Source of the DNA: Ostrea edulis
Taxonomy: Eukaryota
Assembly: GCF_947568905.1 (NCBI RefSeq)
Contig: NC_079169.1
Span: 58,652,001 to 58,716,000, forward strand
DNA length: 64,000 bases
Reading direction: 5' to 3'
Below, piece after piece: positions 95 through 58,206 of this stretch. The position numbers and the translations under genes were made by a program. The notes beneath the pieces are model-generated. The model was not told the origin of the DNA. It ran no database searches and worked only from the letters and a program-made list of their open reading frames with translations. Numbering within the stretch: position 1 is the stretch's first letter; each line of letters starts with the position of its first letter.

Positions 95-3000
95 CATTTT
101 CACACAATGGTCCGGTCCACCCCTGTGTGCATGAACAACTAAAAGAGCCGTGCGTGTTTGTACAATTTCCACCATTACCACACGAGTTAGTGGAGGCACT
201 GCATTCATTCACATCTGTAAACAATCATTGCTGAAAAGTCTTTGTTTGCCTGATTTTTGAGAATAGAATATATAATTATATTAAAATTGCTACATTTCTG
301 AAAAAAATAATGTAAGAGTCTATGGATTAAAAAGTCTTGCACCTTGATCACAGCGATCCGCAGACCATCCCACCGGACAATTGCAACGGAAGGAACCAAT
401 CAAATTAGTGCATGAACCACCATTGTAACACGCTGGCGAGTATACCGTGCATTCATTCGTATCTAAAGATAAAAAATAATACATCATTCAAGAACCTTGT
501 ATACGATAGGGTTATTCTTATAATAAAGAAATCCTATTGGTCAATATATGGAAATATTGGCCTCTCATTTTAAAATATAATACGAAAAGGGTACAAATAA
601 TGTAGTTGTGGTTAGATTTTTTTTTACACAATACACAGACCATGTAATAGTCTAGCAATAGGACATTTTGCTAACATATGACATATTGTATACGTCTATG
701 GCTGCAGCCTTATTTTCGCTGCAGCATAATTTTCGCTATTTTCAACAAAGACCAAAACCTTGAAATTTATAACTACAGAGAGCTTAACATAACTTTTCTA
801 TACAATTTGACGTAAAAACAATGAATTTAAAAATGTGTGAAAACGGATTTAGACAGAAAAGCGTCTACGTAACAAGCAACTTTGTATATTAAGATTTAAC
901 GTTTACTAATCAAATACGAAACACTATGATATACATGATATTCTATTTATACCCATCAATCCAATGGAACCTACCTGTTTCACAATGATTAGCTGTGTAT
1001 CCCTGCTGACAGTTACAGTGGTATGATCCAGCTGTGTTGATACAGCGGCCATGGACACAAGGAGAGGATTGACATTCGTCTATATCTAGATCGAGTTTAA
1101 ATCATCTAAGTTGGTTTCTGCTATGATTGACATGAACATTTTAGGACATAAATAGATTCAGTTGAAGGGTCATGCAAATTTATGTAAAACAAGAGAGCAT
1201 TGTGATCATTGTTGTACTTAAATAATTTCATTCCTAATAAGAACTGAGTCAGCCAATATTGCATAGTCTTATATCTTAGGATTTTCGTCTCAGTGCATGA
1301 AAGCTGCAAAAAGCTGTCATCACTTACCAACCCCTTCACTCACCCATCTCTTCACTTACCCATTTCTTTCCTTACCCGTCTCTTCAATTACCAACCTCTT
1401 CACTTACCCATCTCATCAGTCATCACTTACCCATTTCGTCACTTAACCATCTTTTCACTTACCCATCTCCTCACTTACCCATCTTTTCACTTATCCATCT
1501 CTTTACTTACCTTGATGACACCGCGAACCTGACCAGCCACTGGAACACGAGCACGTGAATGAACCTTGGGTATTTGTACATGCACCGTGATTACACAGGT
1601 GACTAGAACATTCATCGACATCTGAAATAGACCATGTGACTACCAATATAAACAATTCTGTTATGGGTCAGAACAAACCCTTAATATAGCGCAGCAGAAT
1701 TTACTAACAAAAGACAAATATAAAATTGATAATAATTATTTACAATTGATAATTGATAGAAAATGTAACAATAGCAAAATACTAACTTACGGTAGCTGAG
1801 CAATAAATCAGAACAGAATCTACACACACAAAATAGTAAGTCCAAAATCGTGGTTTCCAGTATAATAAAATTTAATATGCATAAAAAGTGTCTAACCAGA
1901 GGTTTTTCAATCATAAGAATTTCAGTGTACGAATAGGTTGTGATCCGTAAAAACAAGAATTGGCTGTACAGTAACATTCAAATAAACCACAAATTACTGC
2001 AAAGCTAATAACAAAGCAAGACACTCTTTTTCAAAGGTTGAATCATTCTGTTGACATTTCGTAAGTTTCTTTGAAAAATATGAAACAACTCTATCTACAC
2101 TGTCACCATGTTCTTGAAACAAAGCAGCAACGATTCCTACGTCAATAGCATCTACAGTAAGCTTAAATTGCTTAGAAAAATCTGGAGCTAAAAGAATTGG
2201 ACTACACATGAGAACAGACTTAATCTTACAAAATGATTCGTCGCAGTCATTTGCCCTCTTTTGCAATAAGTTGGTAAGTGAATCACCTGCTGACGAAACA
2301 TTTGGTCAAAATTTTCTGTAAAAACCTGTCATGCTCAAAAATCTTATTAACTTTTTCTTGTTTGTAGGAATCGGGAACTTTGTAAGAGCCACCACTTTTG
2401 CCATAATAGATGTATCATAACCCTGACCTAGTTTATGACCTAAATACTCTACAGTAGCATGACAAAGGTCACTCTTTGCAAGGTTTACTGTTAAGTTTGC
2501 TTTTGTCAGAATGTCGAAGAATCCACGCATGATTTGGAGATGTTCCTCCCATGTGTCGATGTAGATGATAGCATCATCAATGTAGGCTTCACATCCTTGA
2601 AAGTCACGTAGAAGGGAATGAATCATCCGCTGAAAGGTCGCTGGAGCATTTTTCATACCAAACGGCATCTCTTTGTATTGAAAGAGGCCATCGGGAGTCA
2701 CAAATGCAGAGATTTATTTGTCTCTTTCGATCAATGGCACTTGCCAGTAACCCTTCAACAGGTCAAATTTACTGACGAGTTTGGCATTTCCAATTTTGTC
2801 AATACAGTCCTCAATTCTAAGAATTGGATAAGAATCTGAACTCAAATTTACAAAAAAGGAATAGATGCCGTCAACATAAGCAACATTCTTCGACATAAAA
2901 AGTTCAGTCGTGTATTCCAAATTATTTCAAGTTCAAATACACACCCAGTATTTCTTACAAGTATACCTGTACTATTGCAACCAAGCATTTTAATCATAAA

Positions 3001-6000
3001 CAAACTTTGTAGTGCCTAGATATAGGCCATCTTATACTTAATACACCTACGTGTTCTTGTTCTTCATCTTCTTTCAACTATAGTCCAGCTGGACATGTCA
3101 TTACTGGTGATGTTGATATTGTTGAAAATGAGAACCTCAAATCACTTATTCTAAAAGGTCCTAAATACAGAGAACCTCGGTCTTTCAATTGGCGACAGAA
3201 CTTCACATCTATTATGACTTCTGTCGAAGACTATATCAGACGATGGGCTAAATATCAAATAGAAGAACTTGATACATTGTCAGAATGGATTAAAAGTATA
3301 AGAGGAATATTAAAATTCCGTATTATACATATTAAAACAAAAGTACGTACCATCTACCCTTCTGTGTTTAGTAAACCAAAAGTGATAAAAAGAATTAGAT
3401 AGGTTACACTAAGAATAAGTTTTGGTTCCAGCTGACAAAGCTTGTAAAACATTGTCTTTGTAAGGCTCATTATTACAACTGTATTTTAAACGAACTTAAT
3501 TCCACTTTTGGTAATCATTCTTATACTCCAACTGCCCTTTCAAGAGATGAAATTCTTTAAAACCATTCTTCAGTTTTAGGCACATTTGGTATCCCAGTCG
3601 GGGGGTCGAATGAAGGAGTTACCGTACCTATACTAGATTCCTAAACTACACAAAAACCCTTATAAACAAAGATACATCGCTGGATCCAGTAAGTGTTCTA
3701 CCAAGCCCCCATCTTTGCTCCTCACGAAAATATTAACAGCTGTGAAGGAAAAACTTCAAACTCACTGTGCGACTACATATGCCAGAAGTGGTGTAAATCA
3801 AATATGGATTCTAAAAATTCTAAAGAACTTTTGGTAAACTTGAAATAGCAAAACTTTTCTAAGATCAACAACATCAAAACCTATGACTTGATTATCAACA
3901 CTTTGTAATTTAAACACATTTTATTGAGAAACTCAACAGGATTGGGCAACGGGCATAACCTATGTAGGCCCTCTCCCAACACTTTACACGACCACTCCTC
4001 ACGATGAATTAAAGACTAGACTTTTTGACATCATAGACATTTGCTTCTTCAACAAAAATGGAAAACGGAAATATTCATATCTAGTGATCTGTCATCCAAA
4101 AAATTACTTTGTTAAACACCACTCTGATTCCAAGCACAAGTATTCTGAAGTTGAAATAAAAAATATGCTACAGTTCCTCATTGACAATATCCTCGTGGTC
4201 TTTGGTGATCAGGTCTTCCAACAGTCTGTTGGAATTCCCATGGGCACGAATTGTGCTCCTTTGTTAGCTGACCTGTTTTTATATTCCTATGAAGCAGAAT
4301 TTATTCAGAAACTTCTACGTGAGAAGAAAAAATCTCTTGCTGTAACCTTCAATTCCACATTTAGATGTATCGATATATCGACGACATTTTATCTATTAAC
4401 AATAATAACTTTTATTCAGATGTCGATTCGATATATCCCTGCGAGCTCGAAATGCAAGACACCACAGAGTCGTCCACTTCTGCGTCGTACTTACATAGTT
4501 TGATTTTATTTGTAACACGCAATTGATTGGCTGAGCACACAAAAAAAAAAGAAGTTTATATTGTATAATGTAACTTGCTTTGGGGACACGACAACCCCAA
4601 AACGGCACTATTTGGAAACCAAGATGGCGGTTTTCTCGGTCGACGCTATCTCAGTCTGTTGCTAAGTAATTTTTATTTTTCATTGATTGTTTACTGTTTT
4701 GTATAAATGAAGACTTGTAGAGTGTAGCTTTGTCTTTTTATATCAAATAATAAGGAATGAACCTAATTTTGACCTATGTTATACGATATAATGTAACTTG
4801 GCTTCGCGGATTATAAAGCGTAAACTGCACCAAGTTACATTATCAAGGCAGGCTAATGAAAAAACAAGTTCATGTTACAGGGGTTTCAATAGCCTCGTTT
4901 AAAGACAGCATTTCGCAAATCCTATGGTAGTTATAACGATCTAGTTTGCCAACACAACCTATCATTAGGTCTAATGCTGTCTGACGTGTTTCATACCGAT
5001 TGTTAGACCGTTCGTGGCACACTGATTTTGACTACGGATAACTCCGTTTACCTGATCAAGATATAGTGCTCACGGCAAGTATGACCGGTCGAGAGAGGAT
5101 GCTTACTCCTCCTGGGCACCTGATCCCACTTCTGGTGAGTCCAGAGGCTCTTGTTTGCTGAACTACCTACTTTGTATTGCTTATGGGATTTATGAGATTG
5201 ATCACTGTTCGTCATCTTCACCTTTCTTAGTACAATTCTGTAATGTTTGAGCATTGGCTAAAGTTGAAACTGATTTTACAGAATTTCGGTAACATCTATC
5301 AAAATACTCTTTCAACATGTTATTGTGCCAAACTCGTTTTTATTTACGCCAGCCAGGTGTCTTAACTACATAGTTCACATCACTAAGCTTGCTTTTCAAT
5401 TTCATAAGAACCATAATACCTGGCCTGCAAAGAATGACCAGGAACAGGCAAAAATACAAGAACCTTATCACCTGGTTTAAAACATCTGCTACTAGTATCT
5501 TTGTCATACCAAATTTTCATTTTGGCTTGAGAACTCTTGATATTTTCTTTATGAAGTTTCTCTTTGAAATTGGATACATAGTCTAAAAGGTTAAGATCAC
5601 TAGTATCAGTTAGCCATTTTTCTTTCTGCAATTTCAAAGGATCTCTAACTGTATGGACAAATACTAATTCAAAGGGATAGAATCCTAGAGACTCTTGAAC
5701 TGCTTCTTGTGCAGCAAATAAAACAAGGTGAACCCCTTCATCCCAGTCTCTATCATACTGAAAACAATAGGTCTTCATCATAGTTTAAGGGTTTGATGGA
5801 AACGTTCAAGTGCCCCCTGAAACTCAGGATGATAAGCAGTAGACTTATATTGTATTTTTCCTAGATTTTGACATATTAATTTGATCAATCACATGATCTA
5901 AGCATAAAAGCAATCACATGATTCTATCATTAAAACAGTTACATGATCTTATCATGAAAACAGTCACATGATCCAAGCCTTGAAACAGTCACATGATCCA

Positions 6001-9000
6001 AGCCTTAAAACAGCTACGTGTTCCAAGCATTAAATCAGTCACACGATCTTAGCATGAAACTAATCACGTGTTCCAAACATAACAACAGGGATAGAAAATT
6101 CCAGTGCTCCAAACTTGGCACATACCTTGGTCACAATTTTCCCCTCTCCATCCTTGTTGACAAACACAGTTGTATGACCCAAAGGTGTTGCGGCAGGACC
6201 CATGGACACAAGGATTATCTGTTGTGCATTCATCAATATCTACCAATGTAATGATAATTTTCATTCATATGTCGATTCGATATATCCTTGTGAACTCGAT
6301 ATAAAAGACACCACAGAGTCATCCACTTCTGCTTCATACTTAGATATTTTATTGAAAATAAATATTAACGACAAACTAACAACTCAACTTTATGATAAAC
6401 AGGATGATTTCAGCTTCCCCATCGTCAACTTCCCATATTTATGTAGCAATATTCCATTATCACCTCCATATGGTGTTTATATCTTTCAATTGATTCGATA
6501 TGCTAGAACTTCTTCTGCGTTTAAAGTCAGCATTTCGCAAATTCTGTGGTCGTTATAACAATCTAGTTTGCAAGTACAACCTATCATTGGGTGAAATGCT
6601 GTCTGATGTGTTTCATACCGATTGTTAAGCCGTTCTTGGCACACTGATTTTGACTACAGATAACTACGTTTACCTGATCAAGATATAGGGTTCACAGCGG
6701 GTGTGACCGGTCGACAGGGGATGCTTACTTCTCCTAGGCACCTGATCCCACCTCTGGTGTGTCCAGTGGTCCGTGTTTGCCGAACTCTCTATTTTGTATT
6801 GCTTAAATAGGAATTATGAGATTGATCACGGTTCGTTACCTTCACCTTTCATTGAACAGAGCGTAATGGATGTAACCACGTTACTTTATATACTACATCA
6901 CCACAATGGCTGACTTCCTTATCAACAATATTTATTTATTCCTCTTTAATTTGATTGCCAAGATGAGTAGCTCGGTCGGTTAACGTATCGAGTGCTGATT
7001 TGGAAATCGCGGGTTCGAGTCTAGCAAGGGTTTAATTTTTTCCAGATTACTTTCCACTAAAACTGCATCTTTTACTAAATAAAGCAAATTTAAAAGTTTT
7101 CAATTTCAAAATATTATTGTATATATCCTCCACTTTTCAACCATATCAATTTTCTCCGATGTACTATTCCTCCTTAACTCCACATAAAAGACACCACAGA
7201 GTACTCCACATCTGCTTCGTACTTAGATATTTTATTGAAAATAGATATCAACCGCAAACTAACAAGTCTCAGCTTTACGACAAACGCGACGATTTTAGCT
7301 TCTTCATCGTCAACTTCTCATATTTATGTAGCAATATTCCATTTTCACCTACATATGGTGTTTATATCTATCAATTGATTCGATACATAAGAGCTTGTTT
7401 TGCGTATGATCAGTTTTTAAATCGAGGCAGACTACTGCCAAACGAGTTGATATCACTGGGGTTTCAACAATCTCGTTTAAAGTCAGCATTTTGCAAATTC
7501 TATGGTCGTTATAACAATCTAGTTTGGCAATACAACCTATCATTGTGTCAAATGCTGTCTGATGTGTTTCATACCGATTGTTAGGCCATTCTTGGCATAC
7601 TGATTTTGACTACGGATTACGTTTACCTGATCAAGACATAGGGTTCACAGTGGGTGTGACCGGTCGACAGGGAATGCTTACTCCTCCTAGGCACCTGATC
7701 CCACCTCTGGTGTGTCCAGTGGTCCGTGTTTGCTCAACTCTCTATTTTGTATTGATTATAGGAGTTCTGAGATTGATCACTGTTCGTTATCTTCACCTTT
7801 CATACCCTCTAAATTCGTCTCTGATTAAGCATTGAATGGTTAAGAACATTCTGTTCGTACCGAACGGATGGAGTTTCTGACGTACTGTGACATTTGAACC
7901 TGCTTTCTACGAGGGTTAGTGTGATAGCGATATGTTGGTCTTGTAATGATACTGCGCATGTATCAGTTTTCAAACGATGGATGTGATTGGTTGGAGTATA
8001 ACACATGGGAGAAAGAAACAACATTGGAAGATTTACCCTACTAACTCGGGTACTAATCGAAGTCACCCATTGTATTTGATTACCTCGATCGCAGCTCAAA
8101 CCAAATACCACGTGATTAATGACATCAACAATCAATCATTCATTAGTTAGTTTGGTATTATAATGTAATGATGTATTCATAGTCCAATGATTGCCTTTAA
8201 AATCTTATGATTTACTAAAAGAAATTGTGCTAGAATGTAAATTTCGGAATATCAATGAGCCTTGACTTAGGAACAATAGAAAAACAAATATAAAATTGTA
8301 TGAAGCAGAGTATGAAATGGGGATAGGTGTGGGCTCTATGTGAGGTGGGGAGAGGTGTTGGCTTTATGTGAGGTGGGGAGAGGTGTGGGCTCTATGTGAG
8401 GTGCGGAGAGGTGTGAGCTCTATGTGAGGTGGGGAGAAGTGTGGGCTCTATGTGAGGTGGAGAGAGGTGTGGGCTCTATGTGAGGTGGGGAGAGGTTTGG
8501 GCACTATGTGAGGTGAGGAGAGGTGTGGGCTCTATGTGAGGTGGGGAGAGGTGTGGGCTCTATAGGAAGTGGGGTGAGGTGTGGGCTCTATGTGAGGTGA
8601 GGAGAGGTGTGGGCTCTATGTGAGGTGGAGAGAGGTGTGGGCTCTATGTGAGGTGAGGAGAGGTGTGGGCTCTATGTGAGGTGGGGAGAGGTGTGGGCTC
8701 TATGTGAGGTGGGGAGAGGTGTGGGCTATATGTGAGGTGCGGAGAGGTGTGAGCTCTATGTGAGGTGGGGAGAGGTGTGAGCTCTATGTGAGGTGAGGAG
8801 AGGTGTGGGCTCTATGTGAGGTGGGGAGAGGTGTGGCTCTATGTGAGGTGAGGAGAGGTGTGGGCTATATGTGAGGTGGGGAGAGGTGTGGCTCTATGTG
8901 AGGTGGGGAGAGGTGTGGGATCTATAGGAAGTGGGGTGAGGTGTGGGCTCTATGTGAGGTGAGGAGAGGTGTGGGCTATATGTGAGGTGGGGAGAGGTGT

Positions 9001-12000
9001 GGACTCTATATGAGGTGGGGAGAGGAGTGGGTTCTATGAGATGGGGAGAGGTGTGGGCTCTCTGAAAACCTTCCTCTATATCAATGGTATTGTTTTAATT
9101 ATAGAATACCTGTGCTGCAATTAGTACCATTGTAGCCCGCATGACACGTGCACGTGTAATCTCCATACTTAGCGGAGCAAGTCCCTCTCGACCCACAGGG
9201 GTCTGAACGACAGCCTTCGTCTAAAAAGAATTGTTATACTTAATTCATCAAGGGTGAGAGAGGGTTTCTCATGACAGGAAGATTGATTTCATTTCATAAA
9301 AACTAATAGGGAATTTCTTTTAAAGTTATTAACTGACATTCCCCATCATATACTTTTGTCTAACAATCATAGGCATGATTTAGCTACCGAATATCATGAA
9401 GATAAACTATCACAAACACAGATTGAAAAAATATATTCATAGTATCTTACATCCATTTCCGGCTATTTCGTAAAACCAAATGCCATTTTCGCCTGTAAAG
9501 GTTTTTAAAAAATCAAACATCATAATAATATTAGAAACATGTAAACTTTCACTTTTGTAGACAGACTATGCATTATGCACACACACAATCGTATCGTAAT
9601 GGTGAACAAGAAATTCTCTTTAAGATTCATATGCTATTGAAAGTACTGCTTTTATTCATACGAAATATAAAACATCGTGAGCATATTAATCATTATTTTA
9701 CCCGCATTTCCCTGGAAATTACTCAGTTTGAAAGCATCAGTGGTAAAGGAATACTGCATAGTCACGTGTTTTATATCAGAACTCCAACCAGTATACACGC
9801 TGTGGCTTTGAGAACCCACGTTGACGTTGATATAGTTAAATAGAGCATATGACGTAATGTAATCCGTCATGACGACGCACTGAATGGTTACACGCTACAA
9901 GAAAAAAAAACACTCGCAGCAAGTCTCAATCAGTAAGGATCATGGATTTAAGATATACAATTTGCTTAACATATGACCATTATTTAAGATATAAACAGTT
10001 TTGGGAATACACGAGGGCACGAACTGCTACGCTTTACGTTGGCATGCTTCATGAGGTGTGTTAACTATCGCTTCATGAAAAGTACGTTGGCGTGAAGCAT
10101 TGCTGCTGATACCCTCATTTATTTTCAAAAATAAAAAAAATATAATAACATTTACATTCACTCGGCTTTCCCCTCAATCACTGCGTATGAGTACAATTGA
10201 CCTAAAGAGCACAGCGCGGGTTTATTATTTTAAAAATGCAGTTTCAATGTAAATGTAAAAAATGGATAGAAATAAGTGTATGTCATCTCACTCATATACT
10301 TTCAAAAACTGAAAGACATTTCTTTTAAACTCGTACTCATGTGCTTGAATACATGAAATTCTTTCTCATGTATCTAGTTAGCTATCGTGTCATAACGTTC
10401 TTGAACAATAACAAGCATATACCGGGTATCATTAGTATTCCAATGAATTGATATATACAAATTCATGTTAACGTGAATCATAAAAGATGATAGCTTTATA
10501 AGATTTACGATCCTTGTTCAGATCCAGAATGTTTTAAAAGTTAGATTTATTGCAATATATGTTTCTGTCTTTGATATCTCTACAAATTGTAATTAAAGTC
10601 ATTTCTTCATGACTGCGTTGCAGTTGTGAACAATTCGCGTATGAATCTGAATAGATATAGTACGTCTATTTTAACGGTAAGGACTTTCGATAGAAACGAT
10701 TGCTTGATTTTATCTTGAAACGAAAGTAAAATGTAAATATAATGATAATAATAACAAGCATTCTGACAATATTGCAAAAAATTACTGGACCGCAACAATA
10801 TTCAAAGTTCATTATGTAGGTTATGGTAAAGGGGAAATTTGGGGAACCAGGATAGGAATGGTTGGAAATCAACTACTATTCAGATACAAAGATTAGACCA
10901 GGAAAAAAGACAAATTTATAATTAGGTTTAAATCTTTAACCAAGTCAATAAACTGTGACATGTAGGTAATCATGAATAATTTAGCTACATTGTTGTAATA
11001 CTATGCTAGAAGTTTTAATGAGTGTAGTACTCTTATCCACAGAAATAGAAACTTGGATGAATCAATCTGTCCACCAGCCGCCGCCATACTCTATGTGAGA
11101 CTGAGGCAAATGAAGTCGGTTCCGGCAATATTGCGGCCGGAGTCAGAACAATGCCACGAACAGATCTGCACGCTCTGATTCCTTGACCAATTGCGAACAG
11201 TCGGATATAATATTCTGCGGATCCCAGGAATGACAGATGCTGTTGTGAATCATTGACGAAGGTGACGCAATCAGTTGAAGTGATCCTGTGCAACTGCGTA
11301 ACGCGTGGTCTATTTGATGAAGCATGCTGTTGGTATGGTTGATATCTGTTCCTATAGGCGAGATTTAGTGTTTTGCACACCATTGAAATCCCTTGCAACT
11401 GCAAATTGTGACACACCTGCTTCCAGTACTCCAGATGGGTTGTTGCACTGAGCACCATTCAGATGCGGCATTTCCCAAAAACTGGTTCCATTTAAAGACA
11501 ACGCAATGAGATATCGAGAACCCGTGTATTTGATGCATATTGATTTAGACAAAACTTCAGTTATATCTATTTTACAAAACCCAAACTTCAAAATTTTCCA
11601 TTGATTTTTTAAAGCGTTGATGATACTTCCATCCTCATTATAGAAAATGTCAGGACAGTCTATCAGTGTTTTTTTTATCCATATGAAACTGGGATACTTC
11701 GTTTTAGGTGCATTTGCTTTTGCACGACATTGCGGAAAATTTTCCATCTCTGTTAAATTGAGTGTTGCCCGAATGATAACTCCGAGACAACTTTTCTAAA
11801 GACATTTCCAAATTGAGTTATCATTAACGGTTCTGGAATACCATCTCCAAATACATGGAAAAGTCCTAAACCTGGTAGCAGGTACTTAATGTGATTCGTT
11901 AGAATATCTATACTAATTAGGCTATAGGAATGACTGAGAAAGAAGTAGATGACTTACATCGAGACTTGTCCTGCTACTGTAAAAATTCGAATTCCACCAC

Positions 12001-13614
12001 GTGACGACCAGCATTTCCTTAGCTGTGAAATGAGGATTGTTGGAGTGCAGGAGGACCAGGTTTGTTGCCTTCTGCAGAGTATCGGTGTCGTCTGCAACAG
12101 AGCGCATATACATAGTAACATACATTGCAGAACCGTTTCGGCGTTCCTGGACCAAATCTGTCCAGTAGGGTGCCAATTCCAGGTGAGAGTAGTTCTTGGG
12201 AGTGTACGTTGTATCGGAGTAAGTAGATATAAAACCGTTTGAACACACCTGCAATTAAAATTACAATGCTCAAATCCAAAGTGAAAATAGAATATCATAT
12301 GTACATGCATTCAAAAGTAGTAGTAGAAAGTTTTATTTCAGTGGAACAAATGGAAGAGGGAGGGAACGAGATCCAGGATAATTTTATAATTGATTTTTAT
12401 AGGACTACACATCAGTATCTTTAAAACTACTTATCAAAAATACATACAGTCCGAATATGTTATAGGTGGAATAACATTTATCAACTCACATATAGACGTG
12501 AATACGTCACTGAACCAAATGGAAGCGGGTTTTGAAAACGGAAACTTTTAGTATAGTCATCTCCATCATAGCTGTTTTGATCGTTTCCCCGGGGGAATAT
12601 ATAACTCACTAAGAAGAGAAATTAGATGAACAGTTATTGACATTCTTGAGGTCAATACGATGATTAGCTATTGGAGTGCGAGGTGAATTTTGTACTTCGA
12701 GGGTAGCTGAATCATCGTATTGACCGACAAAATGTAAATGTCAATAAATGTTTTATCATATGACTGAATAATTCCAAACATCGATTGGGTTACTAGAGCC
12801 TACGAAACCGTACCATATTTGTTTATAGCTAGAATCAAGATCTTGTCGAAAGTGATTAGAAATGCAATTCGTTTGTTTATTCTATGACTGAAATTTTAAA
12901 ACATCTCACCAAACGCTACCTGGTCGGTCATCTTTGTTTACAGCTAGAGTGCAAGACTTAGTTAAACGTGATTAAGGACACACTTTTTGAAAAAAAAATT
13001 ATAACTGAATAATTTAACATATCGAAACCGACTACTAGAGATTACCAATCGATACCTAGTCGGTCATCTTTGTTTACAAATAGAGTGCAAGACCTAGTCG
13101 AAAGTGAATAGAGATGTGAGATTTCATTGGACGACCAAAATAATATAAATCGTATCAATTTGTTATATTCGTCTTGAAGGCCCTTGGAGGCTTGAAATTG
13201 TTCAATCATATCATTTTAAAACATATTTTTTGAAAGACAACCACGAGGTTTAAAACGTTTCACATACTTTTAAATCCATACATACTCACATTGAGCCCTT
13301 TGAGCATTTGTTCTTGGAAATCCACTTTGAAAATGTTTGTTTCTGCTTAATGGAACGCAGAGTATATTAATTTAAACTTTCAATATTATCAGGCCAATAA
13401 GAAAGTAAAGGTTTTTCGGAGGTTCGTTTATAAGCATCGTATCGATTAAGTAACATTGGTGCTCTACGTGGGAATTAAGAATAGTATTAACACTATCATG
13501 ATTCATGAATATGTCAATTTCGTAGTTGTGTACTTACAATGTTTCAGTCACAGTTTCAGATGCAATACTGCAGAGAAAAAAGAAGGCAAAGCTGTGTGAT
13601 TTTAAAGATGACAT
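95..13614 (-). CDS. NIDO + EGF-repeat extracellular protein (SNED1-like), paralog A; at least 12 coding exons, 3' end lies beyond the left edge of the window
   Basis: Exons in 5'->3' order: 13614-13538 ([25 protein letters not shown], signal-like), 13342-13290, 12608-12490 ([23 protein letters not shown]), 12248-11958 ([19 protein letters not shown]), 9894-9702 ([21 protein letters not shown]), 9492-9451 ([12 protein letters not shown]), then EGF exons 9220-9110, 6239-6126, 1621-1511, 1085-975, 462-343, 214-95. All introns are GT-AG and the phases (2,1,0,0,1,1,1...) join into one open frame of 487 codons so far. EGF exons read D-[IVT]-[DN]-E-C..C-x-N-x-x-G-S-[FY]-x-C. Confidence 0.88.
1322..1510 (-). 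repeat. 16-bp minisatellite (~11 degenerate units, AGAGATGGGTAAGTGA on minus) at an intron 5' end
   Basis: Plus-strand unit tcacttacccatctct is repeated from 1322 up to the donor of EGF exon 1621-1511. Confidence 0.85.
3030..5228 (+). mobile_element. Naiad-type Penelope-like retroelement (5'-truncated, degenerate; interrupted at ~4490-4850)
   Basis: CxC linker [19 protein letters not shown] at 3048-3180, [24 protein letters not shown], and the family 3' end gagattgatcactgttcg..ttcacctttc. RT is C-terminal with no downstream endonuclease. Confidence 0.8.
4490..4845. mobile_element. Small non-autonomous insertion ending in a hairpin
   Basis: Replaces part of the Naiad RT. It has a 14-bp inverted repeat ataatgtaacttgg..ccaagttacattat at ~4788-4842. 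Superfamily not determined. Confidence 0.4.
5885..6085. repeat. ~25-bp minisatellite (aaacagtcacatgatccaagccttg-like, ~8 diverged units)
   Basis: Tandem periodicity is directly visible. Confidence 0.75.
6245..6851 (+). mobile_element. Naiad-type PLE 3' fragment
   Basis: [34 protein letters not shown] plus the family 3' UTR and terminus. Confidence 0.8.
6960..7110 (+). mobile_element. tRNA-derived SINE-like head (not a functional tRNA)
   Basis: A-box-like tagctcggtcggtta and B-box-like ggttcgagtc; no complete cloverleaf. Confidence 0.45.
7175..7802 (+). mobile_element. Naiad-type PLE 3' fragment
   Basis: [41 protein letters not shown] plus the family 3' end. Confidence 0.8.
8326..9062 (+). 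repeat. 28-bp G-rich minisatellite (gagaggtgtgggctctatgtgaggtggg, ~26 copies)
   Basis: Near-regular tandem units in the intron after EGF exon 9220-9110. Confidence 0.95.
11033..11885 (-). mobile_element. Degenerate Tc1/mariner transposon (N-terminal transposase HTH region)
   Basis: Frameshifted [31 protein letters not shown] followed by [24 protein letters not shown] resembles the Tc1 paired-like/HTH region (MPRL..LEAG..VAR..SGRPRVT..DRYIRL). Confidence 0.65.
12795..13115. repeat. Three diverged ~125-135-bp direct repeats (ggtcggtcatctttgtttacagctagagtgcaagac core)
   Basis: Related blocks at ~12810, ~12920 and ~13060, in intron 2 of paralog A. Confidence 0.6.
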
Positions 13615-13811
13615 GTCTATTAGAAGGAAGCATAAATTCCGAGAAACCGACCTTTATCTTTTCGTTAAGGTTCATGTACGAAACATCACAATGCAAGATA
13701 GCCATACGACCCGAGACTTCATACTTCCTTATCAGTTTAGTGCACCATGTGGTGTAACGAATTTCAGTAAGTAACGTATATCTTGCACTTGAACATAGAA
13801 CTATCATTACC
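13615..13811. promoter_or_regulatory. Putative bidirectional promoter / shared 5' region of the two NIDO-EGF genes
   Basis: Only 197 bp separate the divergent start codons (13614 on minus, 13812 on plus). Transcription start sites cannot be seen in the sequence. Confidence 0.55.
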
Positions 13812-16529
13812 ATGCGATTAATCCCATCTCTTATGATTTTTGGAATATTGAAACACGGCATTTGTTCTTCAAACACTGACAGGTATGAAAAGTATGCATA
13901 ATCTGAATTGAAAATAAATTATTCCTTTCTAAAACGTAAATCAAATAAACAAATTAATTAAACTTTTCATAAAAATTCTTAATAGAACCCTACTGAGGAG
14001 TGGTCCCCATTATAAACACATGTAAAATCATAATATTTGTTTCTTTTCTAGACATATCGATGGTCAGTCACAGCCACTTTTTCCCAGGAATTCTCTTGTA
14101 AGAGATTTGTGTAAGGTCAATTATCTCCTTATATTCATTGAGTGAATCGTGTGTAAACTTACTGTGGTGTGGTTTTTATTCATTATACTAAAAAAGGCTA
14201 CGATAATTGTAATCGAGCTTACAAACTTGAACATGTACATGTATGACGTTCGATTTCTACTTGAGGTATCGTTCATTTGTTTTCGTAGTGCAGTACACAT
14301 ATCCACGCGGGTCTCTGCTCCAAAGCCTTGCCGCCGATGACAATTCCACCTTGATAAGAGTTAGTGATGGAGGACTCGGGATACCAATTGGATACAACCA
14401 AACATACAACGATGTTTTTGTAAGAAAATACATAATTATGGCTTTTCCCACTATTTGAGACTAAGAAAAACATTACCGTTCGATGTCGCTTTCCTGTCTC
14501 CAAAACTCTGTATCGATGAAGTTTTTTCATAAGATTTGAACAGCGTTTTGTAAACCTTGACGTTTTGAAAGATCCTCATGATCATACGCCAGTTCCGAGA
14601 TACGAGCTCTTCTGTGTAGGAGGTGCTTTTAGTGGCACTTTGAATCCTTACGTGGGACAGAGTTGACCTACAATCAGTGAGAAAGACGATAAAATGTATT
14701 AAAAACGGCTTCTCTTTAAATATGTAAATGTAGGAAATACAAAATACTATCGACAGATATCTTTTTTAAAGTGGAACATAAAAATAATGTGATACTTGCA
14801 AGTAACATTCTGGATATGATATGTACATATATGAGCAACGAAATACCGTGATATGATAAGATTTTCGTGTATTTAATTACTCCCTGAATACTTATCATAT
14901 ACTTAGTTTGTGTATCAGTCGAATTCGGGTGATGAAACTGCGTATGAGAAAATTACTGAGCAGATTCACTTGTGATGAATATTTGTCCCACTCCTGCATG
15001 TAAACAAGTTGTTTCGCGCCTTATTATGTATGAGAGTTCTCCAATGGGAAACAACTCGGATGTATCTCGAAACCGGCGTATTGAATCCTCATTGTTTACA
15101 AAACGTGTCACAATGGAGAGAATTACGCGCCCTTCGCACACTTTAAACATCACATGAAGTTTATATGTATGCAATATTTATGTGATGCGCTGTCGCAAAA
15201 ATGGCATGACTAGAAACTACGCTGAAGCTAGCAACCAGTAACCAGAAGCCATCAGCTCGTAGGAGTCAGCAGCCAATTAAGAAAACAATCAAAGTACCGA
15301 AAGTACTCGGACGGAATAGCCAAATTAGTCTTAATACTCGTTTCGTGGACACCTTTCAAAGATTTAGTTGTTATCAAATTTCATCATGATCAATGAAATG
15401 TAAAATTGGGAAATCTTAAATAAGCACAATTGCCTCATAGATCGATTCCACCCCCTTTTAGGATTTTATGGGTTCATCTACATTTTCATCTATCTCTTGA
15501 TCACTTTATTTTCATTTGATCATCCTATATAGAAGTATGAAAATTGACCCATCCTATGACACCCCCATGTGGTACCCCTACATCCTCAAACTGAGGGCGG
15601 GAAATGACTGTCCAAAACGTTCTCTACCTTGCCTCGACACTTGTTTTGTGTACTCTTTAAAGATTAAGAAACTATCAACTTCTATGTTTAATCTTTGAGA
15701 TGAATAATTGTGATGTACCAATTAAACTGTTCAGGCGAGCTAAAATGTTAAATAAATTATCAAAAATCACAATTAACATTCTGTTTATTAATTTAAAATA
15801 TTCTGTCTGATTACTCATAGAATTTTGATGGTTTTCCTTATTGGCTGTTAGCATCTACATGCTTGTAGACTGTTGATATTAGTTGTGCTAGCTTCAGCCT
15901 AGTTTAACCGAGGGACATTGCCTGATCTGCAGCTTGGTAGAACATGTCTTACCCCGCTCGGACGGACCGCCAAAATCACTTCGGCTCGTTAGAATCTGTT
16001 TTATCCAGACCCGACCGCGGAGAATTCCGTCACAGCCGGTATCCCTGCGCCGAATCGCTAATTAAAAGCAGATGATCGTAATAATGGCGACAGGTAATGT
16101 CGTAATAATACATTCTACAAGTATATAAAGAAATTTAACAATACTTTATTTTGGTGAAGGTCAACTCCAATGGTCAGATACTGTTTGGAAGAGACAACAT
16201 TCACAACAACATTCCACATCCAGTGAACAATTACACAGGACCAGATATGCTGGCGCCCTATTGGACGGATTTGTATCCGGTTGGTGGAAATAACGGATAC
16301 GTGTTCTACAACACGTACCGCGCCGACAACCCTGTCGATCACGCCATCGTTTCAAAGGCAGACTTCGGTGTTCTCCTCAACAGTGGAATATCAGATTTCT
16401 CTGCAAAGTGGGTGTTAGTTGTAACATGGTGGAACACCAAAATAACCGATTTTCCAGAGGATGATGTAATTAAAACTAAAAAGACGTCCAACGCTTAAAT
16501 ATGTGATGAAATTTATATCAATTTGTTAC

Positions 16530-16583
<54 letters not shown>

Positions 16584-19500
16584 AATTCTATTAAGGAGAT
16601 ATGCTTTATCTGAACTTATAATTATCCTTTGTTTGAAGCGAATTACGTTCCAGTGCATTCTTATGACGGATTTCATCACAACTTACGCCATCTATAACTA
16701 CATGAGTGTAAATGTCGACCCAAATCACACCCGGGAGAAGGTTGCCATTGGATACAAGACAAATGTCCAGAATTTTAGTAACTCTCATTCATTGAAAGAC
16801 GACGTCTTCCTTTTGAGCAGTTATAGAGGAAATACAGGTTTAATGAATTTTATTCTTGCATTCATATTCTTTGAGTTATGGAAACATGTTGTTGTTTTTT
16901 TTTTAAAATCTGATATAATATATTGTAACGTATTTTCTACGCAGGAGAGCATGGTGTATGGTTTTACGTCATAGCAGATGGTATGTACACAAACTGCTAT
17001 TACATCTGTATCTACTAATTGGTATTCTTGTGTGTAACGTAAAATGCTTCTCCAATTAATCAATGTGATTAATGCACGATTTTTTTTTCTATAAAAATTC
17101 AGATAACGATTGCAAGTGGAAGCCTTGTCAAAATGGAGGATCGTGTGTGGAAAAATATGGCGGATATAAGTGTCTCTGTGCAACTGGCTTTACGGGAGTA
17201 AATTGTGAAATTGGCAAGTTGAAACTGCGATTTGAACCTTTACCTCAATTCCATTGAAAATGTGAAATAATTTACTTTATGTAACAGTATTTAAGTACAT
17301 GTTCTCACTTTTTATGTTATCCAGACATCAATGAATGTTTGACGTCGCCATGTTTCAATGGAACCTGTCTCAACAATCCCGGATCTTTTACATGTGACTG
17401 TTATCCAGGTTTCAAAGCAAAATTGTGCGACCAAGGTGACAGTAGATCTATACTACATGTATTTGCGAATTTTCATTTTATGTGAAATCTGTTCTGCATT
17501 GAAATATAATTAGATGTTTTCTATAATTCTCATCGCAGATATCAATGAATGTAACTATCCCACTATGCCCTGTAAAAACGGTGCCACGTGTAACAATAAC
17601 ATTGGATCCTTTACATGCACATGTGCACCAGGGTGGTCCGGAAGTGTTTGCGATCAAGGTAGACAAAGCAATTTATTGTACATATTAGCTTACTAGTATA
17701 TACTGCAATAGTTAGATACATGTTCGAGTCTAAAACACTTTTATACGACTCTGATTCGATTAAACTTACTACTGGTATCTTATTACTTTCAGAACTGGGA
17801 ATTGTGAAAACATTACTTCTAAAGTATGCTGTTCTAATATTTTTAATTTTCAGACATCGATGAATGTACTAGCACGCCGTGTGTTTATGGAACTTGTATC
17901 AATACACAAGGATCTTACCATTGTAATTGTCCACCAGGAGTAAAGGGGCAACACTGTAATCAAGGTGAGTAAAGACGACACTGAATAGAAGCTTTGTATT
18001 TATAAAGAGACGACACTGAAAGGAAGGTTTGTATTTATAGAGAGATGACACTGAACAGAAGGTTTGTATTTATAGAGGTATGACACTGAACAGAAGGTTT
18101 GTATTTATAGAGAGAGACGATACTGAATAGAAGGTTTGTATTTATAGAGAGATGGCACTGAACAGAAGGTTTGTATTTATAGAGAGAGACGACACTGAAC
18201 AGAAGGTTTGTATTTATAGAGAGAGACGACACTGAACAGAGGGTTTATTTATAGAGAGAGACGACACTGAACAGAGGGTTTATTTATAGAGAGAGATGAC
18301 ACTGAACAGAGGGTTTATTTATAGAGAGAGACGACACTGAACAGAGGGTTTATTTATAGAGAGAGACGACACTGAACAGAGGGTTTATTTATAGAGAGAG
18401 ACGACACTGAACAGAGGGTTTATTTATAGAGAGAGACGACACTGAACAGAGGGTTTATTTATAGAGAGAGACGACACTGAACAGAGGGTTTATTTATAGA
18501 GAGACAATACTTTACAGAGGGATGATAAATGTTTTGTAAAGAGACAATACTTTAAATATGGATGATGAATGCGTTATAGAAAGACAATGTTTTACATAGG
18601 GATGATAATGTTTTATAAAGAGATAATACTTTACATAGAGATAATAGAAGTTTTGTAAAGAGACAATATTTTACATAGGGATGATATATGGATGATAAAA
18701 GGACAGTACTGTACAGAATGTTGGTAAATATAGGATAAAGATAATACAATACTAGTAATTTGTAAATGGATAATGAATAGATAATTTAAATTTGCAGACA
18801 GTTTGCATTTCTTAGTTTATTATAGTGATGAAGTTTTAACTGCATTCATTTTTATTGGGGGGAGGGATATTTTTCCTGTACTTCTATACAGTGTTAATTA
18901 TGTAAATGGGTTTCCCTGTGAAAAAGTGAAGAGAGCAAACAGTGATTAATCTCATAAATCCTATAAAGAATATAAAATTAAGAGTAGGGAAACACGAATT
19001 CCTGTACACATCAGATCATGTGGGATCAGGTTCCTACTAGGAGTAAGCATCCCCTGCTGACTGGTCACACCCATCGTGAGCCCTACATCTTGATGTTTAT
19101 GCATATATCATTATCATAAAATAAAATGATTAGGTTATTTATATTCAGTGTAGTTTTAATTTCAGGGTTAGGGTTAGATGAACTAAGATGTATAGGTAAA
19201 AACCAAAAATCACAACAAATAATTCTGTAAATACACATAAGTTGTTATAAATAATACCATTCGAACTATACAGGACGCTTATAGCCGTAGCATTGAAGGT
19301 TTGCCCACGTTTACCTTGACACGGAACCTCCAATTGTAAGGTTATATCCAATAGTCAAGTATTTCAAACTGTTCAAAAATTCTCGACATTAGCAATAACA
19401 TTCATTAGAGGAACTACTAGTATTTTAGAGAAGTATCTTAAAATGCCACAGTCTTTATCAGCCTCAACATTGGTACAAAAAGCACATACTTGCCTACCTC

Positions 19501-20590
19501 TTTAACTTGTATGCTTTGTTCGCCTGTATCACATTGGTATAAAAAGAAACAAAGGAAAAGACGTTTTCGAAAGCAAAATTGATATAAAATTTTCACCACA
19601 AACCCCCCCCCCCCACCATTTCCTTTGAAAACTTTGCGTTTCCTCAAATCTGTGACAATCCTGACAAAACTCCAAGATTTTTTTCATTGATATTCCAGAC
19701 GCAAAAACCAGAAATATTTTTACATCTAAATTTTTACATAATTTTAAATCTGACAATCCTGACAAAACTCTAAGATTTTTTCACATATTCCAGTGGCAAA
19801 ACCAGAAAAATTTACAAGGAGGGGGAGTTACGGCCCAAGTTTGTATCTATTCCTCCCAAGAAAGGGGAGTGTGTTGAAGATCCCGAAATCGCAAAAAATT
19901 ACCATTTAAAAAAGTTTACCCAAGGGGATTGTTGCAACCCCCCGCAACCCCCTCCATATCTGCTGCTTCATTCATTATTATGATTACATGTAAATATTTT
20001 ACTTAGAAGAAATATTTAGTAGGTTTCACGGTTTTCAATCTGATTGAAAGCAGACCTTTGATCCGCTCCAATATTATGATGTCGTTAATACAAATAATAC
20101 GCTTTGTATTAGCTACATCAATATAAGAGCGGATCAAAGATCTGGTTTTAATCAGCTTGCAGTTTTAAAGTATATTTACAAATTTAAGTGAAAATGGGGA
20201 CCACACGATGCCTTATCTACCTTGTTCTTTTAATCTGATGTAGATGTGAATGAATGCCATGATATACAGCCGTGTCATAATGACGGTACCTGTGTGAATA
20301 CAGTGGGGACCTTCCGCTGTACTTGTGCCGCTGGATATGCTGGCCTGACCTGCAGTTTCGGTAATTTTTAGTCAACAGAATTTTTCACCATACATTTGAA
20401 GATAAATCCTGTGGTTATATCAGCTTCTGCATTAATCTTTCTTTCTTTTTTAACTTGAATGACTGGACATTTTCCTTTCCGTATTTTGTTACATAGAGTG
20501 TGTTTGTTTTGAGGATTGAAGTTTCGTGTCTACTATCTCATTTCAGAATTCAGTAAGATACATGCTGGTCTTGATGTAGTTGGTAAATAA
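13812..20590 (+). CDS. NIDO + 5 EGF-repeat extracellular protein (SNED1-like), paralog B, ~471 aa; terminal exon uncertain
   Basis: Exons: 13812-13882 ([23 protein letters not shown], signal-like), 14052-14110, 14289-14419 (QYTYPRG..ADDNST..YNDVF), 16160-16465 ([19 protein letters not shown]), 16639-16837 ([21 protein letters not shown]), 16945-16980 ([12 protein letters not shown]), EGF exons 17103-17213 (GC donor), 17325-17435, 17539-17658, 17854-17964, 20244-20360, and a putative last exon 20547-20590 ([14 protein letters not shown]). Total 1416 nt, in frame. Intron positions and phases match paralog A. Confidence 0.87.
15214..15905. mobile_element. Non-autonomous TIR element (~690 bp)
   Basis: aaactacgctgaagctagca (15214-15233) and the reverse complement of 15886-15905 match at 19/20, with looser inverted similarity further inside. 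No clear TSD. Confidence 0.5.
16533..16578. repeat. (CT)n microsatellite
   Basis: Direct observation. Confidence 0.95.
17973..18520 (+). repeat. 33-36-bp minisatellite (gacgacactgaacagagggtttatttatagagaga, ~16 copies), decaying to ~18720
   Basis: Begins 8 bp after the donor of EGF exon 17854-17964. Confidence 0.9.
18925..19095 (-). mobile_element. Naiad-type PLE 3' UTR fragment
   Basis: Reverse complement of the family 3' end (aacagtgattaatctcataa..gtaagcatcccctg..ggtcacaccc). Confidence 0.7.
20036..20159. mobile_element. 124-bp miniature TIR element (CAATCTGATT family)
   Basis: ~33-bp imperfect TIR caatctgattgaaagcagacctttgatccgctc / gagcggatcaaagatctggttttaatcagcttg. TSD degenerate. Confidence 0.65.
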
Positions 20591-34849: not shown

Positions 34850-35941
34850 ATGGAATATGAAAATGCCGAGAATAAACCGACAACGTCTCCAGGGAATCGC
34901 AGCGACTTTGTTAATGCTACGGATAAAGCTATGTACTTATTTGAGGATAAGGAATACAGAGGCGTCATTGAAGTTATTTGTACGTTTCTGACGGTGGTTG
35001 GTGTCTGTGGAAACATTACCACTTTCTTCACGACAATTTGCAAAAAACGGTTACATTCTGTAACGTACACTGTGGTTGCTTGTTTGACACTTCCTGACGC
35101 CATCAGCCTCGTTCTGGGATACTGCTTCATCTATCGGTTCCAGGATGAAGTCTTCCTTAATTCGTACATCCTCAGGTTAGTGATTAGAGGAGTAGGCATG
35201 GCGGCAGAACATGGAAGTGCAGCTCACATGGTTTTTCTGGCGGCAATTCGGTGTTTGTTAATTGCCAAACCCCTATGGTGTCACGCCAACCTGAGACCAA
35301 AAAACATTATCGTTGTGTCAGCCTTCCTCTGGTTTTACAGTGTTTGTTTTGCTTCGGGACTGGTAACTATAGTGTACCTCTATCAACATGGTTATTTTGA
35401 TCGACAGACAATGCTGTACATATTTTTTGGACTTTCAATCTATTTATTTTTTCTACCACCTGTATTGATATTTATCTTCCACTGCTTAAAAGTGCGGGCT
35501 GTCAAGAAGTCTATGGCCGTACAAAGATCTTCATTGAGTTCTCAAATGTCAAGAGTGTTCTTGGTGATTTTAATTGCATACATTGCAACCTGTACGGCTG
35601 ATTTGGCGTATCAAATAATAAGTTTAAGAAAAAATTTATTTAAAGCCTCTTTTGAGCTAGATAAAATAATGTTTTATTTACAGTATGGTATGTATGTTCT
35701 ATGGATGATCCATTACTCTTTGAATCCCTTCATATATTTTTTCATCTCCCCTCCAGTTAAAACCCTCCTTCAGAAATTATGTGCAGGAAGTATTTTACCA
35801 CGGGGTTCAAATACTATCAAACACAGGAGTAGTTACGTAGTGAGTGGTGAAAATATATCTGCCTCTTCCAAGAATTCTGTCACGTTTTCAACCGACTCGA
35901 ACACTGTGTTAAAGGATTATTTTCTACGAAATACACCGTAG
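34850..35941 (+). CDS. Class A (rhodopsin-like) orphan GPCR, 363 aa, single coding exon, atypical motifs
   Basis: Seven hydrophobic helices; TM1 GN, TM2 LxxxD, TM3 IRC, TM4 W, TM5 P, TM7 NPFIY. N-terminal sequons NRS and NAT. Possible 5' UTR intron at 34745-34826. Confidence 0.9.
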   Translation: MEYENAENKPTTSPGNRSDFVNATDKAMYLFEDKEYRGVIEVICTFLTVVGVCGNITTFFTTICKKRLHSVTYTVVACLTLPDAISLVLGYCFIYRFQDEVFLNSYILRLVIRGVGMAAEHGSAAHMVFLAAIRCLLIAKPLWCHANLRPKNIIVVSAFLWFYSVCFASGLVTIVYLYQHGYFDRQTMLYIFFGLSIYLFFLPPVLIFIFHCLKVRAVKKSMAVQRSSLSSQMSRVFLVILIAYIATCTADLAYQIISLRKNLFKASFELDKIMFYLQYGMYVLWMIHYSLNPFIYFFISPPVKTLLQKLCAGSILPRGSNTIKHRSSYVVSGENISASSKNSVTFSTDSNTVLKDYFLRNTP

Positions 35942-56832: not shown

Positions 56833-58206
56833 ATGAATATTAGCGGCGTCATTCCCCCCTGGAATACAACTAGTGGAACAATGTCGCTTGAAAACAGTAC
56901 ACCGTCTATGACAGAATACAAACTGTATGACTCTGCAATGAATGGAACTGATGCCACGGTCGCTATGCTGGCGGTACTAATGGCAGTAGGGGTTGTTGGG
57001 AATATACACGTGTTGGCCGTTTTTGGTTTTCAATTTAAGAAGAGCTCCACGTATGTGACGTTTGTTCTCTCTTTAGCAATCATAAACTTCTTGATGTGCA
57101 GTATAGAAATTCCATTTGAAATTTTGGATCTACTTTATCCATACGGTTTTCTCAATCAGTACCTTTGCAAAATATTTAGAACTTCAAATGCTTTTCTTTG
57201 GTTGAGCTCCGTCTTCATTCTCCTCTTAATCGCATTTGACAGATACAAACGAGTTTGCCATCCATTTAAGATCCAATGGTCCATCAAAAAGGCCAGACTA
57301 CTTATTTTGATAGCTGTTAGTGGGGCAACTATTCTCACATTACCTGTTATTTTTGTTTTCGGTCCCCACACTTCAGAGATTGCCAATGGAACTTACGCCC
57401 AGAAATGTTTTTTAGATGACAATGTAAAGGAGAGTGTTTACCCTCTTTTGTACTTGGTCTTTTTACAAATTCTGACCGTCGTCTCGATGATTATTCTTGG
57501 ATTTTCATATATCTCCATCGGATTAACAATCAGAAAACATGCCAAATGGCGAAAGAGAGTCTTACAATATAAAGCAAGCCAACCAAAATACACGAGGGTC
57601 ACTTCAGAAAATTTCACAGGCAGTAAGGAAAATTTCACCAACGATAGTCTGAAGAATTCGGGATGTATCTCTGTCTATACTATTGATACTAAATGTATAA
57701 AAGAAATGTCTAGTAGCCGTGACAAAGAACAGAGTGATGTTCAAACTAACAGCGAAGCTGGGAAACCTAGAACAGAATATGAAAACCATAATGTAGGAGT
57801 ACCAGAAAGTTGGGAAAGTAAAGAAAATGACGCCAGCAATGATTCTAACACAGTGGTCTCGAAAGAATTTAAAAATCATAGAAAATTTGATAGAATGGGT
57901 ATCAATACCCAGTCGAAGAAGAACATGCGTACGAAAGCTTTATTTTTGATCACCGTTGTCTTCATTGTCATGTACACGCCTTACCTGATTCTGGGTGTAT
58001 TTCTGGCCGTGAAAAAAGACTTCCGGGATAATATGAATGACGTAGAGATCACTCTGTATCGTTTAGCAATGAGACTTGTGTATGTAAACGATGTGATAAA
58101 TTGTTTCATTTACGGTATTTTCGACCACCGATTTAAAACTCATGTCTTCCGATTCTACAGTCAATTGCTTTCATTCTTTAAACAGCACTATGTTAAAATG
58201 AAGTAA
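56833..58206 (+). CDS. Class A peptide-receptor-like GPCR (CCK/orexin-receptor-like orphan), 457 aa, single coding exon
   Basis: Seven TM helices; GN in TM1, C3.25 (YLCKIF), DRY, ECL2 Cys (QKCF), long ICL3, TM6 MYTP, TM7 NCFIY. N-terminal sequons. Splice acceptor ttcgttacag lies just upstream of the ATG; a candidate 5' UTR donor is at 54101. Confidence 0.92.
   Translation: MNISGVIPPWNTTSGTMSLENSTPSMTEYKLYDSAMNGTDATVAMLAVLMAVGVVGNIHVLAVFGFQFKKSSTYVTFVLSLAIINFLMCSIEIPFEILDLLYPYGFLNQYLCKIFRTSNAFLWLSSVFILLLIAFDRYKRVCHPFKIQWSIKKARLLILIAVSGATILTLPVIFVFGPHTSEIANGTYAQKCFLDDNVKESVYPLLYLVFLQILTVVSMIILGFSYISIGLTIRKHAKWRKRVLQYKASQPKYTRVTSENFTGSKENFTNDSLKNSGCISVYTIDTKCIKEMSSSRDKEQSDVQTNSEAGKPRTEYENHNVGVPESWESKENDASNDSNTVVSKEFKNHRKFDRMGINTQSKKNMRTKALFLITVVFIVMYTPYLILGVFLAVKKDFRDNMNDVEITLYRLAMRLVYVNDVINCFIYGIFDHRFKTHVFRFYSQLLSFFKQHYVKMK

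Follow-up and report, generated by a model that had tools for sequence, protein, structure and literature searches.

A conserved head-to-head pair of NIDO-EGF paralogues with a short spacer and probably shared proximal regulation in the oyster Ostrea edulis

Two genes encoding proteins built of a NIDO domain followed by EGF modules stand head to head in a 64,000-nucleotide stretch of the Ostrea edulis genome (RefSeq assembly GCF_947568905.1, contig NC_079169.1, positions 58,652,001 to 58,716,000, forward strand), here called the window, whose own numbering is used for all coordinates that carry no other prefix. The window DNA is about 35% GC and lies on C6 of the 895-Mb genome. The plus-strand gene (P) and the minus-strand gene (M) have start codons at 13812 (+) and 13614 (-), so that 197 bases separate them (13615..13811); this spacer, presumed to be a divergent promoter region, is 38% GC with a CpG observed-to-expected ratio of about 1. 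A preliminary description of this DNA had rebuilt both genes exon by exon and had read them as an old inverted duplication kept around a compact bidirectional promoter. Our reconstruction recovered the same exons, the quoted motifs and linkers, and the same distance between the start codons. In all 24 exons of the two genes that lie in the window, every acceptor is AG, and both reading frames are free of stops by script check.

Gene P consists of 12 exons spanning 13812-20590 (+) and encodes 471 amino acids. The model, rebuilt from sequence and checked by script, is the same at every residue as the RefSeq O. edulis protein P0030, which carries the name 'neurogenic locus notch homolog protein 3-like'. 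The earlier suspicion that automated annotation had missed these genes is consequently wrong for P, and it is unlikely to be right for M, because the annotations of the two Saccostrea species contain gene calls for M as well as for P. Exon 1 (13812..13882), identical in P0030, supplies the start codon and signal peptide and ends in phase 2, and a short FPR exon ending in phase 1 follows (exon 2, 14052..14110). The NIDO domain is divided among an N-terminal exon with the sequence YTYPRG that ends in phase 0 (exon 3, 14289..14419), a phase 0-0 core that by itself matches PF06119 at 33.9 bits (exon 4, 16160..16465) and a C-terminal part ending in phase 1 (exon 5, 16639..16837); the YP.G...DD.S motif of exon 3 is also found in other NIDO proteins. 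A phase 1-1 exon encoding a 12-residue linker with GEHGVWFY (exon 6, 16945..16980) leads to five phase 1-1 exons that match the Pfam EGF and EGF_CA families (exons 7 to 11: 17103-17213, 17325-17435, 17539-17658, 17854-17964 and 20244-20360). Exon 12 (20547..20590) adds a 14-residue tail and the stop codon at 20588-20590, which an AATAAA overlaps. The donor of exon 7, at 17214, reads GCAAGT and is the only non-GT donor in either rebuilt gene; its junction is used in the RefSeq protein, and GT occupies the position in both Saccostrea orthologues. An alternative P start at ATG 13747, spliced from a phase 2 donor at 13766, was rejected, as it lacks a signal peptide and conflicts with the RefSeq protein.

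Gene M has its parts in the same order and runs in the window through 12 exons from 13614 down to 95 (-). Exon 1 (13538..13614) contains the start codon and signal peptide, ends in phase 2 and is 77 nt long in O. edulis and in both Saccostrea orthologues. It is followed by the short FPR exon ending in phase 1 (exon 2, 13290..13342), the N-terminal NIDO region with YIFPRG ending in phase 0 (exon 3, 12490..12608), the phase 0-0 NIDO core (exon 4, 11958..12248; PF06119, 36.3 bits), the C-terminal NIDO part ending in phase 1 (exon 5, 9702..9894), which contributes a further 16.3 bits to the NIDO match, and a phase 1-1 linker exon of 14 residues with GENGIWFY (exon 6, 9451..9492). Six phase 1-1 EGF exons complete the portion in the window (exons 7 to 12: 9220-9110, 6239-6126, 1621-1511, 1085-975, 462-343 and 214-95). 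The preliminary description had the pair begin at position 95, but 95 is not the end of M: past the donor at 95/94 the gene goes on through another five EGF exons, all phase 1-1, which lie 14-3093 bases beyond the left edge of the window (flanking stretch L004: 9986-9867, 9612-9493, 9069-8950, 7977-7864 and 7020-6907, all on the minus strand). The full M protein thus comprises NIDO and 11 EGF modules in about 700 amino acids. Its 3′ end may be a read-through past EGF 11, which would give a tail of about 25 residues, with two short candidate exons also present, and the gene ends about 0.7 kb short of a single-exon rhodopsin-type G-protein-coupled receptor (GPCR) gene on the opposite strand.

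The introns of both genes contain repetitive DNA. Three minisatellites (1320-1511, 8318-9061 and 17973-18504) start at or just after exon donors: a 16-bp unit containing GGTAAGTGA adjoins the donor of M exon 9, a 28-bp unit in 26.7 copies begins 49 bp past the donor of M exon 7, and a 35-bp unit in 15 copies begins 8 bp past the donor of P exon 10. Remnants of a retroelement, with reverse transcriptase and RNase H sequence (1994-2701, minus strand), sit in the intron of 4.5 kb that separates M exons 8 and 9, and other open reading frames, repeat-like but unclassified, occur at 4084-4503 and 5383-5781.

Exon end phases are 2,1,0,0,1,1,1,1,1,1,1 in both genes, as the preliminary description had stated in calling the intron maps identical, but the positions do not agree throughout: intron 1, although equal in phase, is shifted by 6 nt: P has a first exon of 71 nt and a second of 59 nt, M has exons of 77 and 53 nt, and the two add up to 130 nt in each gene. 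The proteins are collinear and 40% identical across 459 amino acids (E=4e-124, local BLAST), in keeping with the substantial divergence noted earlier. The spliced models were used for this alignment, for the comparison with P0030 and for the tree described below, while database searches took single exons or database proteins as queries. On the full P protein, the NIDO family PF06119 scores 72.7 bits over residues 85-265 (cut-off 25) and EGF_CA scores 118 bits, and EGF exons match PF00008/PF07645 in both genes. There are 5 six-cysteine EGF modules in P and 11 in M. Most EGF exons begin with the DxD/NEC signature of calcium-binding modules (DINEC, DIDEC, DVNEC, DVDEC), the first EGF of each gene being without it. 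In agreement with the preliminary description, Pfam detects NIDO and EGF-type domains only: neither sushi nor FN3 domains were found in complete P or among the M exons to the end of the gene. Neither protein has a membrane anchor, and the window models of both lack an RGD motif. From these features we infer that the P and M products are secreted, calcium-binding glycoproteins of matrix or adhesion type.

P and M resemble SNED1, a secreted protein in which EGF and calcium-binding EGF modules come in series immediately after an N-terminal NIDO domain. On their domain composition they are, however, not SNED1 orthologues, because they have no sushi/CCP domain and no C-terminal FN3 domains, whereas SNED1 possesses a follistatin-like module, a sushi/CCP domain, 15 EGF modules and three FN3 domains (10.1101/2020.07.27.223107); P is complete at 471 amino acids with NIDO and 5 EGF modules, and M has NIDO and 11. 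SNED1-like is nevertheless the routine name for bivalve genes of this kind, which are listed among secreted mantle and immune-response genes. The RefSeq 'Notch' name of P, judged by its domains, reflects EGF similarity only. P shares Notch-type calcium-binding EGF repeats with Notch but has a NIDO head, and the Pfam scan of P0030 yielded NIDO and EGF-type families alone, without the LNR, NOD, transmembrane or ankyrin parts of Notch. The same scan found neither the G2F beta-barrel nor the LDL-receptor YWTD propeller, and P differs in this from nidogen, in which these parts follow NIDO.

The function of the NIDO domain has not been established in any protein (10.1101/2020.07.27.223107). The predicted structure of the P NIDO region (P0030 residues 25-310) has a mean predicted local distance difference test (pLDDT) score of 71, and neither a PDB sequence search with the NIDO profile nor Foldseek returned a solved relative of the domain, the only near matches in Foldseek being fragments of Notch EGF repeats. 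VIA-align gave weak matches to the NIDO model (Z 5-6.3), mostly to galactose-mutarotase-like beta supersandwich domains, which hints that the modelled domain may adopt a sugar-binding-type beta supersandwich fold. These supersandwich domains come from carbohydrate-active enzymes and YidC.

P and M belong to a larger family. The O. edulis genome contains at least 11 NIDO loci, which include P, M, six loci on C4 (25.9-26.1 Mb) and three on C5, and no other compact head-to-head NIDO pair occurs among them. The NIDO core exons (exon 4) of the C4 and C5 paralogues are 33-45% identical to those of P and M, and the division of NIDO into three exons recurs in these paralogues where it could be traced (exon 3 at 5 of 9 loci, exon 5 at 4 of 9), so that the intron map shared by P and M is a trait of the family and not of the pair. 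The C4 and C5 genes have the NIDO exon structure and the NIDO plus EGF plan of P and M, but they are arranged in tandem or far apart, and one annotated C4 product is a chain of several NIDO-EGF units: XP_048763725.2, of 1178 amino acids, has four NIDO domains and begins with a partial match to a MAM domain. One C5 paralogue (about 40.746 Mb, L006:7270-8250) shows an unusual local repeat, in which some 20 tandem 49-bp units lie directly upstream of an exon-5-type NIDO exon, each unit being a copy of the acceptor region and first 14 codons of that exon.

A maximum-likelihood tree of the NIDO core, built from P and M of Ostrea and Saccostrea, the C4 and C5 paralogues and outgroup NIDO domains, groups the P genes (support 97/98) and the M genes (100/99) into two clades, both containing sequences from Ostrea and from Saccostrea, places P and M as sisters (85/74) and sets the C4 cluster apart at 100/99. 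The branch path from P to M is about four times that between Ostrea and Saccostrea orthologues, and in exon 4 each gene is 72-73% identical to its Saccostrea orthologues, compared with 38% between P and M. Because both clades hold members of the two genera and are sisters to one another, we take the duplication to have been old, local and inverted, as had been proposed, and to have happened inside this larger oyster NIDO-EGF family; support for the sister relation itself is moderate and not strong.

The arrangement is found outside Ostrea as well. An exhaustive profile search with P exon 4 returned one close cluster, represented by P0001 of Saccostrea cucullata, and after it only remoter proteins with several NIDO domains and short exon fragments from metagenomes. 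Immediately upstream of P0001, on the opposite strand, is a gene of 704 amino acids, and exon-by-exon tblastn identifies this neighbour as the M orthologue (exon 4, 72%) and P0001 as the P orthologue (about 72%). The M(-)|P(+) order is also present in S. echinata. Start codons lie at 9474 (M) and 10001 (P) in S. cucullata and at 9385 (M) and 10001 (P) in S. echinata, giving spacers between start codons of 526 and 615 bp, respectively, against 197 bp in O. edulis. The comparison of synteny and start-codon spacing that the preliminary description had recommended therefore upholds the head-to-head order, which is kept in two Saccostrea genomes, but not the spacing. From the conserved arrangement, P and M have been head to head since before the split between Ostrea and Saccostrea. 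The two Saccostrea species each have one M gene but three P genes in tandem; P copies were located at L016:12050, 18435 and 29502 (+) and at L015:10001 and 22565 (+). The number of EGF modules differs between P and M and varies between species. Two irregularities were seen at the Saccostrea loci: further downstream in S. echinata there is another M-like NIDO exon, which a frameshift splits (L016:36308-36570, minus strand), and the M gene of S. cucullata comprises 12 or more EGF exons and one EGF exon with an in-frame stop (L015:700-1300).

When the NIDO part of P0030 was the query of word-index searches, only five P-type proteins came back, all from Ostrea or Saccostrea, and full-length P0030 matched, beyond P-type proteins, only at the level of EGF; no database entry for M was among the matches of searches with P-derived queries. 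These results suggest that a P orthologue may be absent from Crassostrea/Magallana, within searches bounded by a length window, word sampling and 50% clustering.

The spacers of the three oyster species have a single 10-mer in common, CTTATCAGTT (13728..13737, plus strand in O. edulis), a GATA-type site that reads TGATAAG on the minus strand; a shared 10-mer was reached in 6 of 500 shuffles. The O. edulis copy of CTTATCAGTT is 113 bp away from the start of M and 76 bp from that of P, and the distance to the M start codon is 113, 99 and 97 bp in the three species. Variants of CTTATC stand about 55-76 bp before the P-type start codons checked, with Saccostrea at about 55-65 bp and tandem copies included (the third copy of S. 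cucullata and the first and third of S. echinata). Saccostrea spacers accordingly have two copies of the motif, one near M and one near P, and O. edulis has one, suitably placed for both genes. Between Ostrea and Saccostrea, P and M introns gave no alignment above that of shuffled sequences, which indicates that neutral DNA is saturated at this distance. We read CTTATCAGTT as genuinely conserved though small, a candidate element of the promoter. The best alignment of the O. edulis spacer is with the 160 bp nearest to P in the S. echinata spacer (0 of 300 shuffles); the O. edulis spacer looks like the collapse of a longer spacer with two sites, or else the Saccostrea spacer would be an expansion.

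We propose that P and M are a conserved pair of NIDO-EGF paralogues with a short spacer and probably shared proximal regulation, and we hold this explanation as a whole to be likely. Transcription of each gene most likely starts in the short spacer with its conserved GATA-type element and proceeds outwards, and in O. edulis the two probably share proximal regulation and would often be co-expressed. The bidirectional-promoter class is defined by divergent genes whose transcription start sites lie less than 1 kb apart. Sharing of a promoter in O. edulis is plausible: among head-to-head pairs, starts separated by 100-400 bp are the most frequent arrangement, and genes so arranged tend towards co-regulation (PMC1487180). 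Co-expression of P and M is plausible as well. For the compact bidirectional promoter of the preliminary description, a shared element is suggested by one conserved GATA-like motif, and the distance of 197 bp is peculiar to O. edulis.

Several observations weigh against shared regulation or against the history on which it is built. Scanning the spacer for core promoter elements revealed no TATA, CCAAT or GC box, no CRE and no CpG island. Upstream ATGs are present on both strands, and one of them, 19 nt before the M start codon, opens an overlapping out-of-frame upstream open reading frame, so that the M mRNA would need a very short 5′ untranslated region or leaky scanning. Spacer length varies threefold between the genera, and alignment of whole spacers is marginal, the observed scores being reached in 17 of 300 and 89 of 300 shuffles. 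The sister relationship of P and M has only moderate support (85/74). Finally, the triplication of P without M in Saccostrea means that tight coupling of the two genes is not required.

The alternative that survives best, though we think it unlikely, is that the arrangement is merely inherited, with separate promoters and separate expression, and that the short O. edulis spacer arose by neutral deletion, without regulatory significance. In favour of this, microsynteny among related oysters is expected from descent alone, and the 526-615-bp Saccostrea spacers hold a separate motif copy by each gene; the tandem P copies have their own motif and no M partner, and 40% identity with 5 versus 11 EGF modules is typical of sub- or neo-functionalised duplicates. 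Simple inheritance fits less well with the retention of P/M adjacency over a path about four times that of the Ostrea-Saccostrea split, with a motif whose distance to the M start codon stays fixed amid saturated neutral DNA, and with the usual co-regulation of head-to-head pairs at such spacing (PMC1487180).

It is rather improbable that the 197 bp are not a promoter at all, the transcripts instead beginning at upstream non-coding exons or starts inside the partner gene and overlapping head to head. In favour of such overlap are the crowding of upstream ATGs on both strands, the lack of classical core promoter elements, a TTT(C/T)AG conserved in all three species about 42-46 nt before the P start codon and a donor-like A|GTAAGT at 13766. 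The candidate acceptor, however, has no pyrimidine tract in any species, M has an in-frame stop 42 nt upstream of its first in-frame ATG, and the conserved motif stands at a promoter-like distance from the start codons of 7 genes or gene copies.

A more elaborate form of shared regulation is highly speculative: in O. edulis, a deletion would have fused two once separate proximal promoters onto one GATA-type element, creating a co-regulated two-component matrix module, and the two NIDO heads would assemble with one another in the matrix of mantle, shell or haemocytes. By analogy, and as part of this same doubtful joint reading, the module might be an invertebrate counterpart of the paired collagen IV genes. 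Like P and M, COL4A1 and COL4A2, and the further head-to-head pairs of collagen IV, are divergent paralogous matrix genes with a very short shared spacer and an arrangement conserved across species; in collagen IV, however, the bidirectional promoter and the co-assembly of the chains have been demonstrated experimentally, whereas for P and M both are inferred and copy number in Saccostrea is unbalanced. Least probable of all is that P and M are obligate partners that form a heterodimer or co-polymer through their NIDO domains in the manner of collagen IV chains, in line with the 'obligate' co-expression and possible heterodimer of the preliminary description, for this draws on no more than the analogy to COL4A1/COL4A2-type pairs, the long-term adjacency and the dimerisation question reported to be raised by SNED1 (10.1101/2020.07.27.223107), and it fits poorly with three tandem P copies to one M and with EGF numbers that are unequal and vary between species.

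Three single-exon GPCR open reading frames of the rhodopsin family, all on the plus strand, flank P and M (L004:4941-6197 and window positions 34850-35941 and 56833-58206), with 7tm_1 scores of 114.5, 31.7 and 119 bits in that order, and they are possibly a local GPCR family.

We found no paper on the P/M pair in the literature. As an arrangement the pair is ordinary, since head-to-head paralogues are common, and the candidate shared GATA-type element is only a mildly new detail. If P and M are co-regulated, the 197-bp spacer with its one candidate GATA site would be a small natural bidirectional promoter of a bivalve, for which the two-site spacers of 526-615 bp in rock oysters provide a ready comparison, and fragments of these spacers would be useful for reporter and transgene work in oysters. 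The database label is also corrected: P and M are to be regarded as NIDO-EGF proteins of secreted matrix type and not as Notch homologues, which matters for the lists of immune-response and shell genes compiled in oysters.

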